Positions 6,968 through 12,846 of a DNA stretch of 64,000 nt are shown piece after piece. The DNA lies in the IMG/VR virus record IMGVR_UViG_3300037258_000590, positions 1-64,000 of that record; one strand, 5' to 3'. Numbering within the stretch: the stretch's first letter is position 1; every line of letters starts with the position of its first letter. Under the pieces are notes generated by a model. The model was given only the letters and a program-made list of their open reading frames with translations, made no database searches and was not told the DNA's origin. The translations under genes were made by a program, and so were the position numbers.

Positions 6968-7128
6968 GCATCACTGAGTACCTGGATGAGCACCCGGGCG
7001 AAACGCTCACCGAGCAGCAGATCGCGGACGGGACAGGCCAGGGCAGCCAGTTCGTCGGCGCGTTCATGCGCGCGGCGGCTGACCGGGACTGGGCTGAGCG
7101 CGTGCCCGGCGGCTGGCGGCTGCCGTGA
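6964..7128 (+). CDS. Small winged-helix-like protein
   Basis: MSITEYLDEHPGETLTEQQIADGTG...WRLP; GTGA overlaps both sides; below the ORF-track cutoff. Confidence 0.65.
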   Translation: MSITEYLDEHPGETLTEQQIADGTGQGSQFVGAFMRAAADRDWAERVPGGWRLP

Positions 7129-7280
7129 ATGCTGGCCGGGGCCACCGCCTCTTTTCCTGCTCCGCCTGGATCCGGTGCCGGCGTGACGGCAGCCTGCGGG
7201 TGCATCACGGGTACTGGCCGCGGTCAGGCATCGCGGCCTGTACCCGGGTCAGGAAAGTGATTGCGGAGACCGCGCCGTGA
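7125..7280 (+). CDS. Small hypothetical Cys/His protein
   Basis: GTGA overlaps both sides; 51 aa. Confidence 0.5.
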   Translation: MNAGRGHRLFSCSAWIRCRRDGSLRVHHGYWPRSGIAACTRVRKVIAETAP

Positions 7281-7777
7281 CCCTGCGCATGCGGCTCATG
7301 ATCACCGATGACCTGGACGAGCGCGAGAAGGACCAGTTCAACGAGGCTACGGTGACCACGGTGGTCTCGCTGGACGGGATCATCCGGGAGCTGCACCTGA
7401 CCCAGGCGCATTACGACGAGCTGGCCCGGCTCATGGGCCGGTACGTCCAGGCAGGCCACGAGCCCGGTGCCGGGCCGGTAACCGATCCGGCACCGGAGTC
7501 TCCGCGCGGCGGCCAGGGCTCCCGGCGGGAGATCCCCGGCACCCGGGAGTTCCTGGCCCGGGTCCGCGCGTACGCCGCGGCGCACGGTATCGAGGTGCCC
7601 ACAGCCGGCGGCAGGCGCGCGACGTACAAATATTCCGCGGAGTTGCAGGTGAGCATCGCTCAGGACCTGAGGCGCCGGGCGGAAGGCGGGGACCCGCAGG
7701 CTGCCGCGGACCTGGTGATGGCGCGCCGGATCAGCTTCTTGCCCGCTGAGCCCGGCGGGGCGCCTCCGGATGCGTGA
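7277..7777 (+). CDS. lsr2: Lsr2-like nucleoid-associated/xenogeneic-silencer protein
   Basis: N-terminal LMITDDLD...VSLDG..RELHLTQAHYDELARLMGRYVQAG matches the Lsr2 dimerisation domain; C-terminal RAYAAAHGIEV matches helix 1 of the Lsr2 DNA-binding domain. Confidence 0.8.
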   Translation: MTLRMRLMITDDLDEREKDQFNEATVTTVVSLDGIIRELHLTQAHYDELARLMGRYVQAGHEPGAGPVTDPAPESPRGGQGSRREIPGTREFLARVRAYAAAHGIEVPTAGGRRATYKYSAELQVSIAQDLRRRAEGGDPQAAADLVMARRISFLPAEPGGAPPDA

Positions 7778-7898
7778 TCTTGTCTCTGCGCGCCCGGTTC
7801 AGAATACTGGGACCAGGATGGTTGTTGATACGCTTGGAGACTAGAGAAGACGCAGGAGCAGTGCCCTCGGGTGCCGTCTCCGGATAACGGAGCGAGAT

Positions 7899-8807
7899 GT
7901 GGCGGAGGAAAGGCAGGAACGGCCCGCGCAGGCGGCTATCAGGCGCCCTGCGTCGGGCATCTCCATCGATCCTGGCCGGCTGGCCTGGTGGCGGGAAAGC
8001 CGTGGATGGTCTCGCCAGGACCTCTCTGATGCGGTCACCGCGCTCAGCCTCACCGATGAAGACGACGCCCCGCTGACCGTGACACGCGATGCGATCGCCA
8101 AGATCGAGAACGGCGAGCGCAAACCCAAGGCGCGCACTGTCCGGGCGCTGTGCGCTGCGCTGAGCAGGGTCCTGGCGCCGCAGTATGATGCTGCCGGCAC
8201 GTACACCGGGGACACCTGGGAACCGGCGCAAGCGCCCGTCAGCCCGCTGGATCTCATGCCGAGCACGACTCCGCTGACCCCGCATGAGGACGCGATGGCC
8301 CGTCGTCTCCGGCTTTCGCACAATCGTGACCTGCGCGCTTTCGCCCGCGAATACGGAATTCAGTACAAGAACCCGGTGTCGCAGCGCGTGTACTACTCCC
8401 GTCCGCTTCGCATCGCGTATAACCTGCTCATCGCCGGGGCGTCAGCAGAAGCGCTGGCCGCTGCCGTAGCGGGCGCTGTGGCGGCCAGCGCGGGCGGCCC
8501 TGCAGCCGGAGACAGCCTGGACCTGGATGACCTGGACGAACGAGACAGCATTACTGAACTGGACCTGTCTGCCCGTACGCATAACGCGCTCATCCGCGGC
8601 GAGCTGCCCGGCGGTCACTGGCAGCCCGTCCGCACGATCGGAGAGCTGACCGTCTGTACCGCCGCCGAGCTGTCCGCCATCCGGAATTTCGGCCTCACCT
8701 CGCTAGCGGAAGTCCGGGAAAACCTGGCCGCCGCCGGGTTCGCGCTCAAAGGCGAGGAACCGGCTAGCCGCGGGACGTCACCGGACCCTGCGCTGCTGGC
8801 CTCGTAA
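7899..8807 (+). CDS. XRE-family HTH regulator fused to an Lsr2-like domain and an RNA polymerase alpha C-terminal domain
   Basis: LAWWRESRGWSRQDL...IAKIENGERKP (XRE); SITELDLSARTHNALIR...TIGEL....AAELSAIRNFGLTSLAEVRENLAAAG (alpha-CTD). Confidence 0.88.
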   Translation: MAEERQERPAQAAIRRPASGISIDPGRLAWWRESRGWSRQDLSDAVTALSLTDEDDAPLTVTRDAIAKIENGERKPKARTVRALCAALSRVLAPQYDAAGTYTGDTWEPAQAPVSPLDLMPSTTPLTPHEDAMARRLRLSHNRDLRAFAREYGIQYKNPVSQRVYYSRPLRIAYNLLIAGASAEALAAAVAGAVAASAGGPAAGDSLDLDDLDERDSITELDLSARTHNALIRGELPGGHWQPVRTIGELTVCTAAELSAIRNFGLTSLAEVRENLAAAGFALKGEEPASRGTSPDPALLAS

Positions 8808-8819
8808 GAGCGGCTTGCG

Positions 8820-10340
8820 ATGGCGGCTGTCATCACCGGAACGCGGTGGCTCATCGCAGGTGCACTCATCGTCATGCTCGTGCTCCGGCTGGCCGGAGGC
8901 CGCGTCAGCGCGATGGCTGGCTGGGCACTGATAATCGCGGCTGCGGCGTGCGCAGCTGCCGGAGAAATCAGGAGGACCTATGGGATTCATCGGAGAGCGT
9001 ACGATCCGGCGTGTGTACGAGCCGCTGCCGGACGAGCGGGATGTGCCAGCGGAGGAGCCGGTTTCTGTTCCTGCGCCATCTGTGCCGGCAGTTCCTGTCT
9101 CAGCTTGACCTACGGGCTCTGGCAGCTGATGCCCAGAACTTTGCTCCAGCCGTCCGCTCCGGTAACAGGCCAGTTTCCGCTGCGTTTCGTGCCTGCGCGC
9201 ATCATGCGCTCTGGTGGCAGCGGGTTCGTCGCAGGAGCTGCCGGCCGTCTGCCGCCCGCCCTCAACCTGGCTGCCGGCGGGGGTTCTGGTGCTGGCAGTT
9301 ACTCCGCAGGGGCTGCTGGCGGGGGTTCTGGTGCCGGCGGCAGTTACTCCGCAGGGGCTGCTGGCGGGGGTTCTGGTGCCGGCGGGTCCGTCGCAGGGGC
9401 TGCCGGCGGCTCAGGAAGCGGGTATGCGTACGGGGGTCTCGTCAACGCCGGCGGGTCAGCGGGTGGCGGCCGTTATCCCGCGGGCAGCGTGAAACAAGGC
9501 CTGAACGACTTCGACGGCGCGGAGTTCGTGGCCGGAACCGTGCGCGGCTACCGGTGGTGGTCGCTGGTTGCCCCGCCGCTGCACCTGAGCCCGGCCAAAG
9601 CGGCGGATAGCTGGTATCCGGGGTTGCTGAACGGCATGCGCGGGCCGTGGCAGCCGGGCCTCAATCACGCGAGGTGCAACAGCGCCCGCCAGCACCAGCC
9701 CGCGGAGATCCCTGCCTCCGGCTGCGGCTGCGGGTGGTGGGCGTACTGGCAGATCCAGCACCACGACCTGAGCCTGTCCGGCGTCCAGATCCCGGTTGTC
9801 GGCGTGATCGAAGGCCGCGGCCAGGTCCTGATCGGGGAGCGGGGCTTCCGCGCGCAGCAAGCCACGGTCGTCGCCCTGCACCTGCCGTTCCGGATCGTCC
9901 CCGACCTGCCCGCGGACTGCGAGCCCGCACGGGACGCAGTACTGCTGAACTTCCGGGAGCAGCCGGAATACGGGCGGCACAATCCGTGGTGGAATCACCC
10001 GCTGTTTACCGGCGCCGTGCATAACCTCAGCACGGGCCGGCCATCAGGGCCCCCCGGCCGGGTGCAGCCACCAGAAGCCGGCCCTCGCAGGCAGCCTACC
10101 GCGGCTGAGGTCATCGGAGCGCAGGACCAGGCTGAAGCATGGATGGCGGTTATCGGGGATTACCTGGACCAGGCGTACCCGGACGCCCGGATGTTCGAGA
10201 CCCTGGACGCCATGCTGGCCGTATTCCCGCCCGCCCCGCAGAGCGTGCCCCGGGAAACGCAATGTTACATGTGCCAGGAATGGTTCCCCGACATACACGA
10301 TCACTACATGTCGTGCGGTAAGTTCCGTTTCGGCGCCTGA
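8820..10340 (+). CDS. Hypothetical protein: possible N-terminal TM helices, Gly-rich repeats, conserved RGYRWW...C.CG.WAY...G.RA domain, C-terminal Zn finger; true start may be 9129
   Basis: Open frame of 506 codons; a nested ORF with a strong SD at 8980 argues that the start is ambiguous. Confidence 0.75.
   Translation: MAAVITGTRWLIAGALIVMLVLRLAGGRVSAMAGWALIIAAAACAAAGEIRRTYGIHRRAYDPACVRAAAGRAGCASGGAGFCSCAICAGSSCLSLTYGLWQLMPRTLLQPSAPVTGQFPLRFVPARIMRSGGSGFVAGAAGRLPPALNLAAGGGSGAGSYSAGAAGGGSGAGGSYSAGAAGGGSGAGGSVAGAAGGSGSGYAYGGLVNAGGSAGGGRYPAGSVKQGLNDFDGAEFVAGTVRGYRWWSLVAPPLHLSPAKAADSWYPGLLNGMRGPWQPGLNHARCNSARQHQPAEIPASGCGCGWWAYWQIQHHDLSLSGVQIPVVGVIEGRGQVLIGERGFRAQQATVVALHLPFRIVPDLPADCEPARDAVLLNFREQPEYGRHNPWWNHPLFTGAVHNLSTGRPSGPPGRVQPPEAGPRRQPTAAEVIGAQDQAEAWMAVIGDYLDQAYPDARMFETLDAMLAVFPPAPQSVPRETQCYMCQEWFPDIHDHYMSCGKFRFGA
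8980..9108 (+). CDS. 42-aa acidic Pro-rich peptide (MGFIGERTIRRVYEPLPDERDVPAEEPVSVPAPSVPAVPVSA)
   Basis: AGGAGG directly upstream of ATG 8980; lies in the +1 frame inside the 8820 ORF. Confidence 0.6.
   Translation: MGFIGERTIRRVYEPLPDERDVPAEEPVSVPAPSVPAVPVSA
9276..9420 (+). repeat. Three imperfect 42-45-bp coding repeats (GGGSGAG(G)SYSAGAA)
   Basis: Direct repeats visible in both DNA and translation. Confidence 0.8.
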
Positions 10341-10343
10341 GCC

Positions 10344-10402
10344 AGCCCGGCCCGCGTCAGCTAGTCTCCGCCCTTAGCCTGACCTGGGCCGGGCTCCTTT
10401 TT
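10344..10402 (+). terminator. Intrinsic terminator
   Basis: AGCCCGGCCC/GGGCCGGGCT outer stem, inner GTCAG/CTGAC pairing, followed by CCTTTTT. Confidence 0.75.
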
Positions 10403-10433
10403 ACCTATATAAAATGTAGCTGCACAGCCAGTT

Positions 10434-10463
10434 TTGACAAATCCTTCAACGTCATTGTAGACT
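10434..10463 (+). promoter_or_regulatory. SigA/HrdB-type promoter
   Basis: TTGACA-N18-TAGACT, 47 nt upstream of ATG 10511. Confidence 0.8.
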
Positions 10464-10510
10464 GGTAAGGACGGCAGAGATACACGCGGCACCCACCCGG
10501 AAGGACCTCC

Positions 10511-11833
10511 ATGGGAACCATCACCACCCAGGCTAGGAACGCCGAGCTTCCCGACATCCTCACCATCTTGCAGGAGCAGCGAGCCCGGCGGCTGGATGTC
10601 GTGGTGCGTCACGGCATGATCGATGCTTACGGCGGCCACCTGCTCGTCCGCGAGGGCGACTCCACGCAGTGGATGAGCGACGAAGAAGGCGTCACCTCGG
10701 CAGCCGGGCTCTACGTGCCCACCGCGGTCGGCGACGAAGGACTGGCAGGTCTCCTCGGCGTTGACGGCGGTTTCCTCAAGAAACTGCGCCGGCTCGATCC
10801 CGCACGCACCGACCTGTGGGATGCCCTGATCAACGGGTTCCTGCACGGCGGCAGCGAGACCATCGACGGCGAGACGCTGAACTACCCGCCCTACGACGGC
10901 GCTATCCTGCTGCGCCTGCTCAAGGGCGATGACACCACGGACGGCGTGCTGCGCGCGGCGCTGTCGCCCCGGTACAAGATCATCGACAACCTCGATGTCT
11001 TGCTCGCGGTCATGGACGGGCTCCGCAAGGCCGGCGTCAGCGCCATCCCTGACGTGTCCGACCTGACCGACCGCCGGATGCATGTCCGGTTCTCCGTCCC
11101 TGAGATCGCAGCGCTCGCGCCCGTGCTGCTGGACAGCTACCGGTCCCCGTTCGACGGGCCTGGCGGCGTGCAGCGGGCCGGCCAGGACGGCAGTCCTGGA
11201 ATGCGGCTCGACGTCGGCCGTTTCGGCCAGGGCGCTGAGGGCCTGCAGCGTGTCCTGGCGCTAGCCCGGCGCGAAGGCCAGGAGTACCCGCCTGGCCAGG
11301 AACCGGTGGTCTTCGCGGGCATCAAGGTCACCAACTCTGACGTGGGCGAGGGCGCCCGTTCTATCGCACCAGAGATCGTGGTGCAGATCTGCGGTAACCG
11401 GTTCACGCTCACCGCCGCCGCCGACCGGGCCGTGCATCTCGGCTCTCAGAAGGACGAAGGTGTCATCAAGTGGTCCGCGGAGACCGCGGAGCGCGAACTG
11501 GCACTGATTACCTCTCAGGCCGCCGATGCGGTACGGACTTTCCTCACTCCTGAGTGGTTCACCGGCAAGGTGGCCGAGATCGAGGCCCTGGCCGGCGTAC
11601 CGGTGAGCAAGCCCGAAGCCGTCATCAAGGACGTTTCCAAGGCTGCCGGGTTCACCCAGGGCGAGACTGCTGACATCCTGGCGCACTTCTTCCGGGGGGG
11701 CGCGTTTACCTCTGGTGGCGTGGCCAGCGCAGTCACCTCGGTCAGCCAGACCCTGGACAGCGCCGACCGCGCGGCCGAGCTGGACGCCAAGGCGGTTGAC
11801 GTCATGGCTCACGCGGCACATCTCGCTCGCTGA
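10511..11833 (+). CDS. DUF932-family phage/plasmid protein
   Basis: RAALSPRYKIIDNLDVL, LTDRRMHVRF and GIKVTNSDVG.GA..I...I...ICGN motifs; GGAAGGA SD. Confidence 0.75.
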   Translation: MGTITTQARNAELPDILTILQEQRARRLDVVVRHGMIDAYGGHLLVREGDSTQWMSDEEGVTSAAGLYVPTAVGDEGLAGLLGVDGGFLKKLRRLDPARTDLWDALINGFLHGGSETIDGETLNYPPYDGAILLRLLKGDDTTDGVLRAALSPRYKIIDNLDVLLAVMDGLRKAGVSAIPDVSDLTDRRMHVRFSVPEIAALAPVLLDSYRSPFDGPGGVQRAGQDGSPGMRLDVGRFGQGAEGLQRVLALARREGQEYPPGQEPVVFAGIKVTNSDVGEGARSIAPEIVVQICGNRFTLTAAADRAVHLGSQKDEGVIKWSAETAERELALITSQAADAVRTFLTPEWFTGKVAEIEALAGVPVSKPEAVIKDVSKAAGFTQGETADILAHFFRGGAFTSGGVASAVTSVSQTLDSADRAAELDAKAVDVMAHAAHLAR

Positions 11834-11840
11834 AACGGCC

Positions 11841-11873
11841 CGCCCGGCCCCTGCCTGAACCAGGGGCCGGGCG
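11841..11873 (+). terminator. GC-rich hairpin after DUF932 gene
   Basis: Perfect 13-bp stem CGCCCGGCCCCTG/CAGGGGCCGGGCG, 7-nt loop, no U tract. Confidence 0.7.
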
Positions 11874-11910
11874 GCGCTCCACATGCCCTGTAGCGATGAA
11901 AGGAATGCCC

Positions 11911-12165
11911 GTGAATGACAAAGGGCTGCTGACCGGCTGGACCGCGCTCCTGGTCGTGGCCGGGTTCGGGCTGGTTGTAGCAGGCGGAGCGCTGGCCCCG
12001 GATGGCAAGCTGTACGTCTGGCTGCTCATCGGAGCGTGGTGCCTGACGCTGACCGCGTTCAGCAACGTCTACCGGAAGGTCCGGGACAAGGTAACGGAGC
12101 GCGCGATCCGCGACGACGAGCGGCGCCGGCTGAGCGGCCTGCCTGCCCAGGACAAGAGCCCGTGA
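11911..12165 (+). CDS. Small two-TM membrane protein
   Basis: AAAGGA SD; two hydrophobic segments. Confidence 0.7.
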   Translation: MNDKGLLTGWTALLVVAGFGLVVAGGALAPDGKLYVWLLIGAWCLTLTAFSNVYRKVRDKVTERAIRDDERRRLSGLPAQDKSP

Positions 12166-12449
12166 GCCGGGGCAGACTCCGGGACCTGGCTGACATCGCG
12201 CATGAGGTGCGCTGGGCCGCCCTGGTCGTCGGCGCCGCCATCCCGCTGGCTGCTCCCGCTGGGCCAGGGCCGTCCGGACACGCGGCTGCTGACCGGACGG
12301 CCCTGCGCGCGGGCGCGTTCAAGCTGGTTCTCGCTGAGCTGATGGACTGCGAGATCATCTGCAGCGCGGCCAGCATGGACGAGTTGCTGGCGGGCCGCCT
12401 GCCTTCCGGGATGAACGAAGCTGACGAGCCCGCCGGACCGGTGACCTGA
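12162..12449 (+). CDS. Hypothetical protein
   Basis: GTGA coupling. Confidence 0.6.
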   Translation: MSRGRLRDLADIAHEVRWAALVVGAAIPLAAPAGPGPSGHAAADRTALRAGAFKLVLAELMDCEIICSAASMDELLAGRLPSGMNEADEPAGPVT

Positions 12450-12450
12450 C

Positions 12451-12846
12451 GTGACCGCGCCGAAGGTCGTCAGCACTGCGGCTAAGGCTTACCTGGTGTG
12501 CTCGCTGGACGTGCACGTTGAGCCGGGCAGCGTACCGGACAGGCCTGTGCCGTATGACGTGCACGCCACGTTCCGGCCGGACCGGCTCCGGCTTTCGTTC
12601 CAGGTCAGTGCTGAGCATGACCAGCTGGGCATGCTCAGTGCTGCCGCAGTCAGGCCTGATTTTGCCGCCCGCGGGGAGGCTGCCGCATCCGGGGTCGTCC
12701 TGTACGGCCTGCGGCTGCACGATGACGGGCACCCGGGTGACCGCAAGGTGACCGAGCATTTCCGCGTCCCTGCGGAGCGTGCTCCAGGATGGGTGCAGGA
12801 GATTATCGCGAGCACGCTGGCCGGCCTGACCGGAGGGCCGTCATGA
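12451..12846 (+). CDS. Hypothetical protein
   Basis: Abuts previous stop; ATGA coupling downstream. Confidence 0.7.
   Translation: MTAPKVVSTAAKAYLVCSLDVHVEPGSVPDRPVPYDVHATFRPDRLRLSFQVSAEHDQLGMLSAAAVRPDFAARGEAAASGVVLYGLRLHDDGHPGDRKVTEHFRVPAERAPGWVQEIIASTLAGLTGGPS

Follow-up and report, generated by a model that had tools for sequence, protein, structure and literature searches.

A conserved peptide gene in the +1 frame of a long viral gene, probably overprinted by the upstream extension of its enzyme-like partner

The stretch of DNA analysed here (the window, 64,000 nucleotides, nt) comprises the first 64 kb of the 210,383-bp virus record IMGVR_UViG_3300037258_000590, which has direct terminal repeats and 67.6% G+C and which we judge, from its relatives, to be a large phage of an actinomycete host. 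In the window, a gene for a 42-residue peptide (8980-9108, + strand) lies wholly inside a longer open reading frame (ORF; 8820-10340, + strand). The peptide gene is preceded by a Shine-Dalgarno sequence, AGGAGG (8970-8975, +), and a spacer, ACCT; it opens with ATG at 8980 and runs for 42 codons to a TGA stop (9106-9108), encoding MGFIGERTIRRVYEPLPDERDVPAEEPVSVPAPSVPAVPVSA. The AGGAGG also codes for Arg-Arg in the long frame. As in embedded gene pairs, the small ORF is contained entirely in the larger one, in another frame (+1) and with its own start signals, and the coordinates, start and frame given in an initial annotation made from the sequence were correct. On its own, the AGGAGG is moderate evidence for a gene, as the 210-kb genome contains 97 such sites, 36 of them followed by a start with an open frame of 30 codons or more. 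The motif is under-represented genome-wide (97 sites on both strands, as compared with approximately 150 in mononucleotide shuffles).

The long ORF encodes a 506-amino acid (aa) protein with two predicted transmembrane (TM) helices (approximately 8847-8900 and 8904-8963; 8847-8963 overall, +), a basic patch, a Cys-rich linker, Gly-rich repeats, a conserved domain and a C-terminal CxxC...C tail. Its hydrophobic stretches, at approximately aa 10-27 and 29-48, reach 17-residue Kyte-Doolittle means of up to 2.24 and 1.99. The Cys-rich stretch (9012-9098, +; Cys at aa 65, 75, 83, 85, 88 and 93, including a C.C..C) lies over the Pro/Val/Ser tail of the peptide, and is followed by a tandem repeat (9269-9409, +; approximately 3 copies, period 42-45 nt, 86-93% identity) that encodes the Gly-rich linker in GGGSGAGGSYSAGAA units. 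The conserved domain (approximately aa 226-470; 9495-10229, +) contains the motifs GFDG, GTVRGYRWW, C...H...CGCGWWAYW, GVIEGxGxxLIGExGFR and AEAWMAVIGD. Several homologues share the tail, delimited by its Cys positions (CxxC...H...C; 10263-10316, +), which might possibly form a small zinc-binding element. The TM, Cys-rich, Gly-rich and domain architecture also occurs in other family members, and Gly-rich linkers are present in homologues too.

Peptides of the form G.IG......EP.P lie directly upstream of proteins carrying the motif CGCGxWAYW, as the initial annotation had suggested for IG..R....EP..P peptides and a C.CG..A family. The same pairing is found in viral contigs, actinomycete metagenome-assembled genomes (MAGs), metagenome contigs and Frankia-type isolates. 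The peptide consensus is MGDIGE....I.[FL]EP.P...EPVP[AG]; its profile matches the window with expectation (E) values of 3e-17 to 3e-16, related loci being similar, and 541 called small proteins, all of them unnamed, match it at E<=0.01. Residues 1-16 (MGFIGERTIRRVYEPL; 8980-9027, +) are conserved in the alignment. The tail is acidic and proline-rich with a conserved EPVPA/G end, and the Cys, Ser and Thr typical of modified peptides are not there. Among the loci examined, the peptides are 35-58 residues long and contain no DNA-binding domain. The domain of the partner, of approximately 230 residues, defines a family with 6464 representative clusters at E<=1e-3.

The initial annotation had proposed a search for small ORFs upstream of homologues of the large protein. 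Such a search recovered the conserved peptide in 65 of 80 loci from a scan of metagenome contigs, as well as in other loci; of the 69 metagenome loci whose upstream sequence extends to 300 nt or more, just four had no peptide. The 80 loci include 33 in which the peptide gene overlaps that of the partner by 4 nt, 24 in which the two are separate and six in which one is embedded in the other. In the commonest layout, the partner start (ATGA or GTGA) overlaps the peptide stop, which implies coupled translation. In the loci L006-L008 this overlap reads GCATGA, and the chromosomal contigs L036-L038 carry a 35-40-aa gene and a 233-236-aa gene with a 4-nt overlap, among ordinary and variable neighbours. 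Separated genes are exemplified by L034, where the two genes share a frame without overlapping (TGA GCC ATG), and by L040, where a free-standing peptide gene precedes one encoding TM, Cys-rich, Gly-rich and domain segments. The peptide profile also matches upstream of the partner in L001, L003-L005 and L011, and weakly (E 0.006) in L002; the actinomycete MAG loci L013-L021 carry MGDIGEEITEIELEPLPEEMP...EPVPG. Very distant pairs, with the peptide MGDIGKPERIVEDEPI..PDEEPL...EPVPA, occur in Frankia-type isolate genomes, where the genes are annotated merely as "hypothetical protein" (e.g. WP_198535936.1 and WP_165615902.1). No peptide was found upstream of the partner in L009, L010, L012, L027 or phage BRock. 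The domain is patchily distributed, being present in 12 of 301 sampled genomes of the class, a count that includes two unpublished genomes, G032 and G038, used for it alone. These comparisons show the conservation, the pairing and the three layouts (separated, overlapping by 4 nt and embedded).

In homologous DNA, a small ORF occupies the +1 frame of the long ORF in L024 (peptide MGDIGKTVHPRRIYEP...LVPA), L028 (MGNIGRTAKRVYEP...) and L026. An AGGAGG stands 4-7 nt before the peptide ATG in L024 and L028, whereas L026 has no clear Shine-Dalgarno sequence; extended to AGGAGG or GGAGG, the same spacing holds for L024, L028, L031 and L063/L064. The first aligned peptide codon is ATC, a non-canonical start, in L026 (position 348) and L034 (position 1093). 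L026 has a GTG three codons upstream and L034 has none after its GGGAGG, so that a rare ATC start or else an error of assembly would have to be assumed for the latter. The peptide of L029 is publicly annotated as a 41-aa gene, while that of L031 is present but uncalled; free-standing copies are called in L029 and L040, not in L031, and embedded copies were missing from the called gene models at the embedded loci that we looked up.

We examined selection on codon-aligned peptides from the seven closest loci. Nucleotide differences at codon positions 1, 2 and 3 of the peptide frame were 0.31, 0.34 and 0.55, and translation in the peptide, large and third frames gave amino-acid identities of 0.49, 0.34 and 0.28, respectively. 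The peak of differences at third positions, together with the highest amino-acid identity, indicates that the peptide frame is under purifying selection. Judged from its conservation, then, 8980-9108 is a genuine, widely conserved small gene and not a chance ORF. A likeness of the large frame between loci (RR.Y..HR) was rejected as a sign of large-frame conservation, being a by-product of the conserved AGGAGG-ATG-GGN (Shine-Dalgarno sequence, ATG and Gly codons).

A codon-usage model derived from the long ORFs of this phage, with in-frame and out-of-frame windows for calibration, divides the overlap between the two frames. In the long frame, 8820-8978 resembles coding sequence, its score being equalled by 0.1% of out-of-frame windows, and 8980-9042 does so in the peptide frame (0.2%); neither frame is coding-like over 9043-9105, and the long frame is so again over 9105-9230 (1.3%). 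Together with hydropathy, these values agree with the earlier observation that the first 50 aa of the long frame resemble TM helices and that this frame reads as shadow sequence over the peptide. The G+C content of third codon positions (GC3) and sliding codon likelihood by themselves give no clear picture over 9000-9480, as both are distorted there by the Gly-rich repeats and by the overlap; likewise, frame plots mislead over 9269-9409 due to the unusual codon use of the tandem repeat.

The initial annotation had left a choice between true overprinting and a peptide gene upstream of a protein starting at 9129. The open frame, the TM extensions and the Cys content speak for overprinting, whereas the start at 9129 gained no special support; it is not favoured, and the ancestral coupled start position is the codon overlapping the peptide stop, which in the window is TTG 9105 (TTGA, 9105-9108, +). 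The window forms a clade with L024, L026, L028, L029 and L031, and in all six loci the large frame is open across the entire peptide, back to an ATG just behind the upstream gene. Synonymous resampling gives a chance of 33-43% per clade locus for an open large frame and a product of 0.003, a figure that overstates independence, the clade loci being related. Outside the clade, 10 of 11 loci, mostly of the 4-nt-overlap type, have a large-frame stop across the peptide. Most relatives start the partner at the codon overlapping the peptide stop; five of the six clade loci have CTG there, and protein conservation in the clade (GLTG.D.YGN.FPA) starts at this codon, ahead of any canonical start.

The metagenome scan provided further embedded loci, with long (L063, L064, L065 and L095) or short (L056 and L058) extensions. 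A TM-grade stretch (19-residue Kyte-Doolittle hydropathy of at least 1.8) was present in seven of the eight upstream extensions of at least 29 aa, as compared with 0.7-1.7% of random stop-free windows from this genome, and extensions comparable to that of the window occur in L024, L028, L063, L064, L065 and L095. Membrane anchoring also exists without any overlap, in L027 (two helices, no peptide) and L040, and similar non-overlapping TM-anchored proteins are P0011, P0068, P0074, P0075, P0077, P0098 and P0099. Over the peptide tail, the large frame reads ...PACVRAAAGRAGCASGGAGFCSCAICAGSSC..., with six Cys, when synonymous resampling of the peptide yields a mean of 1.46 (P(>=6) approximately 0.0009). 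This excess stems from 11 of the 42 peptide codons ending in T, the GC3 of the peptide being 0.60 as compared with approximately 0.80 in the training ORFs. L024 behaves likewise (four Cys, P approximately 0.005), and the C.C..C spacing resembles that of Cys-rich linkers behind the TM helix in non-overlapping relatives.

A ribosome that initiates at 8820 would make the long protein, since there is no stop before 10340, and we consider it probable that a long, membrane-anchored protein is made. Constraint on both frames is statistically demonstrable by these comparisons, and genuine dual coding appears to be the best reading of the locus. If the long protein is made, we conclude that dual coding is partitioned in the window, the first half of the overlap being shaped by the peptide and the second, at least in part, by the large frame. 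As TTG 9105 overlaps the peptide TGA, a coupled restart giving a shorter, soluble form would also be possible.

The invariant residues in alignments of the domain comprise two Arg (one in GYRWW, the other on the long hairpin), three Cys and several Gly; an S-T-S motif was not present. AlphaFold2 models were obtained for the window domain (predicted local distance difference test, pLDDT, 78; predicted template modelling score, pTM, 0.75) and for a chromosomal short form with approximately 30% identity to it (pLDDT 83). A sequence profile search of the PDB returned only noise, a structure search of the ESM Atlas only unnamed actinobacterial clusters, and a feature search of the Atlas no usable match. 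By exhaustive structural alignment, the lists for both models consisted almost entirely of ADP-ribosyltransferase-fold proteins, headed by Tpt1 (7yw4), with Z 5.0 (root-mean-square deviation, rmsd, 3.2; 101 aligned) and Z 5.5 (rmsd 3.4; 104 aligned) for the two models. Further structural neighbours included DarT/DarTG, Scabin, KptA, TreX, Arr, the pertussis and cholix toxins, PARPs, Tne2, MbcT and ParT. An ADP-ribosyltransferase fold is thus weakly indicated by the models, as a consistent lead and not as a finding, and the invariant Arg of GYRWW could correspond to the strand-1 Arg of these enzymes. In P0059, P0077, P0084 and P0111 (500-650 aa), the domain is interrupted close to the CGCG motif by an intein-like insert of the LAGLIDADG type, whose position suggests that this motif is functionally central.

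Models of the domain in complex with the peptide reached interaction prediction scores from aligned errors (ipSAE) of 0.62, 0.61 and 0.63, as compared with 0.00 for the best of three controls. Of 80 solved complexes, 58 attained the ipSAE mark, as did two of 110 mismatched pairs; both counts apply only roughly here, own alignments having been used for the complex models. At least 84% of contacts are common to the runs, and the partner pLDDT is 53 or higher. Residues 1-16 of the peptide, which are also coding-like in the peptide frame, form the predicted docking segment and contact domain residues 15-23, 55, 82-91 and 114-127 (counted from 9474), that is, the conserved motifs and the hairpin. 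Modelling supports binding of the peptide to the conserved face of the domain and, with the conserved adjacency of the genes, favours the dedicated peptide-enzyme pair put forward in the initial annotation.

On balance, we consider it probable that 8980-9108 is a conserved peptide gene whose product is the partner of an ADP-ribosyltransferase-fold-like enzyme, and that it has been overprinted by the upstream extension of the partner gene. On this view, the peptide is the smaller member of a two-gene module, unnamed but widespread, that Actinomycetes and their phages carry. In the clade of large phages to which the window belongs, the partner frame would have extended upstream over the peptide gene to ATG 8820, adding two TM helices and enclosing the peptide gene, in the +1 frame, within the linker-coding part of the partner gene. 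The peptide would be translated from its own AGGAGG-ATG and the long protein from 8820, which would tether the enzyme to the membrane in this phage, while a shorter soluble form may restart at TTG 9105. Conserved residues 1-16 would dock as a strand on the face of the domain that is conserved best, leaving the acidic, proline-rich tail free. The domain would most likely be a divergent ADP-ribosyltransferase-fold enzyme that the peptide restrains or tunes in the manner of a small antitoxin. This antitoxin-like or gating role, favoured because of the operon layout, the patchy distribution, the carriage by phages and the structural neighbours that are toxins with cognate antitoxins, is the most likely one for the peptide, and we propose it tentatively. 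It is conceivable, though less likely than not, that the pair constitutes an undescribed conflict module in which a peptide of approximately 40 residues gates a non-canonical Cys-cluster ADP-ribosyltransferase-fold enzyme, membrane-tethered in large phages by gene extension over its own regulator, the family recording separated, overlapped and embedded stages.

Several observations weigh against this interpretation. Peptide and large protein or domain had no match in Pfam, PHROG, PADLOC or NCBIfam, and neither domain model had a Foldseek match in the PDB. The fold scores are Z 5.0-5.5 or lower, when the alignment tool deems even values of approximately 8 unremarkable; the Glu of GVIEG varies (E/Q/K/R), and no canonical H-Y-E or R-S-E triad is evident. 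The complex score expresses the confidence of a model and is not a measurement, and the inteins of some family members would be unusual for a toxin. Regarding dual coding, the one close embedded pair, L063 and L064, gave a ratio of nonsynonymous to synonymous substitution rates (dN/dS) of 0.62-0.67 with both coding frames alike, a weak result; the Cys enrichment, noticed before it was tested, is missing in L026, L028, L029 and L031; and, with TTG retained at the ancestral coupled start in the window, the non-overlapping product could be the main one.

The proposed architecture might instead serve a peptide that is no inhibitor, namely a substrate (for example, with its tail modified after leader-like docking of residues 1-16), an obligatory subunit or a chaperone, which we regard as a less likely but serious alternative. 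A conserved N-terminal docking segment followed by a more variable tail resembles a leader/core organisation, and docking in the complex model occurs by strand addition beside the conserved motifs. Intein-bearing members and early phage regions would suit a needed enzyme better than a poison. No canonical catalytic Glu is evident. Conversely, the composition of the tail, without the residues usually modified, and its conserved end do not suit a substrate; stand-alone operons with a 4-nt overlap, variable neighbourhoods and presence in only 12 of 301 genomes look like toxin-antitoxin systems, and several structural neighbours are toxins with cognate antitoxins.

It is improbable that the locus consists of the peptide gene and a separate downstream gene, starting at TTG 9105 by coupling or at ATG 9129, with no meaningful product from the upstream open frame. 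The 4-nt overlap is the commonest layout in relatives (33/80) and the window keeps a usable TTG; moreover, the large frame is poorly conserved and scores poorly for codon usage over 8979-9104, and an open -1 frame across 42 GC-rich codons arises by chance in approximately 33-43% of cases. However, two genes would leave unexplained the coding-like character of 8820-8978 in a large frame without stops until 10340, the recurrence of TM helices, far above chance, in the extensions of independent embedded loci, the CTG at the overlap codon of five clade loci with conservation preceding any canonical start, and the Cys enrichment in the overlap.

A fusion of the TM segment to the peptide by +1 frameshifting, either programmed by the AGGAGG or caused by an assembly error near 8935-8979, and followed by a separate enzyme gene, is very unlikely. 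The TM segment of the long frame adjoins the peptide in the +1 frame, which is open from 8935, and in prfB an internal Shine-Dalgarno-like sequence stimulates +1 shifting, a precedent for the AGGAGG. Nevertheless, the same frame relation recurs in the independent assemblies L024, L028, L063, L064, L065 and L095, which excludes a sequencing error; there is no shared slippery site, the conserved elements being the Shine-Dalgarno sequence and then, at 4-7 nt, a mostly canonical start (ATG/GTG); and most relatives have the peptide without an upstream TM segment. Both versions of the frameshift were rejected. Finally, it is hardly credible that the peptide frame is a shadow ORF arisen by chance within a genuine 506-aa gene: short ORFs are common in the shadow frames of GC-rich DNA and AGGAGG is not specific to starts, but conservation contradicts this reading, with profile matches adjacent to the same partner in dozens of loci that have diverged, a substitution pattern favouring the peptide frame and independent gene calls in public annotations.

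The neighbours of the pair include regulator-like genes. Directly upstream, 7899-8807 (+) encodes an XRE-type helix-turn-helix (HTH) domain fused to a module resembling the C-terminal domain (CTD) of the RNA polymerase alpha subunit (PF03118, E 3e-10); this gene type also precedes the pair in L028 and L034. The alpha CTD is a target of T4 Alt and ModA, which makes such a neighbour intriguing beside a possible ADP-ribosyltransferase-like enzyme. Further upstream is a gene for an Lsr2-like nucleoid-associated protein (7277-7777, +; PF11774, phrog_1223), and Lsr2-like genes are also found upstream in L024 and in the P0011 contig. Behind the long ORF, a terminator-like hairpin with a T run (10376-10404, +), which would close the transcription unit, is followed by a strong promoter-like site in an AT-rich stretch (10434-10463; TTGACA, 18 nt, TAGACT), indicating a transcription-unit boundary. 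The next gene (10511-11833, +) encodes a 440-aa protein of the PHROG family phrog_1362, of unknown function (E 9e-64); a gene for 453-462 aa, a possible homologue, has the same position after the pair in L024, L029 and L031. The synteny of these neighbours (Lsr2-like, HTH/alpha-CTD-like and phrog_1362) is alike in L024 and L028. In the related phage contig L024, an Acb5-family gene (PF26761; 444-710) a few genes upstream of the pair hints at an early or counter-defence region. No cultured phage was matched by 7000-12500 in a megablast search; with tblastn, the sole match among them was gp216 of Streptomyces phage BRock (26% identity).

The locus adds a real small gene of a kind missed, when embedded, by standard gene callers, and it defines a large unnamed protein family with a dedicated peptide partner, for which a concrete functional hypothesis can be stated. 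The same pair offers a natural series from separated to 4-nt overlapping to embedded genes, in which a membrane anchor was captured by upstream extension; this series should be useful for studying the origin of overprinted genes and the sharing of constraint between two frames. If the enzyme is indeed an ADP-ribosyltransferase-like effector, the pair would be a candidate phage-host conflict system.

We found no description of the peptide-partner pair in the literature, and three known systems offer comparisons. The RNA 2'-phosphotransferase Tpt1/KptA is the best structural match of both domain models and shares a conserved Arg on the first strand and on the hairpin. Tpt1 has an Arg-His-Arg-Arg tetrad, which was not located in the domain; Z is low, identity is 6-8%, and we know of no Tpt1 counterpart for the Cys cluster (C...C.CG).

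Type II toxin-antitoxin systems with ADP-ribosyltransferase-fold toxins (DarTG, ParST, MbcTA and NatRT) resemble the pair in having a small upstream gene, a 4-nt overlap and a two-gene operon, and also in their patchy distribution, variable neighbourhoods, carriage by mobile elements and, as predicted here, binding at the conserved face; toxins of this type are among the structural neighbours of the domain. Unlike them, the pair has a short peptide without a DNA-binding domain and no canonical catalytic triad, some of its members are membrane-anchored or intein-bearing, and it has no sequence match to any of these systems or to PADLOC models.

The closest genetic analogue is lambda Rz/Rz1, in which the gene of a small proline-rich protein sits, in the +1 frame, wholly within that of its membrane-anchored partner. 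A two-component spanin was nevertheless rejected. The peptide has no signal sequence, hydrophobic N-terminus, lipobox or Cys; its neighbours are Lsr2-like, HTH regulator and phrog_1362 genes and not a lysis cassette; and the pair also exists as a plain chromosomal operon without a membrane anchor. The geometry differs as well, as the small gene lies here near the 5' end of the large one, its embedding being attributable to the upstream extension of the downstream gene. Spanin pairs occur embedded, overlapped and separated, but in the survey of these genes no family mixes the embedded layout with the others (PMC6139136), whereas a single family shows all three layouts here.

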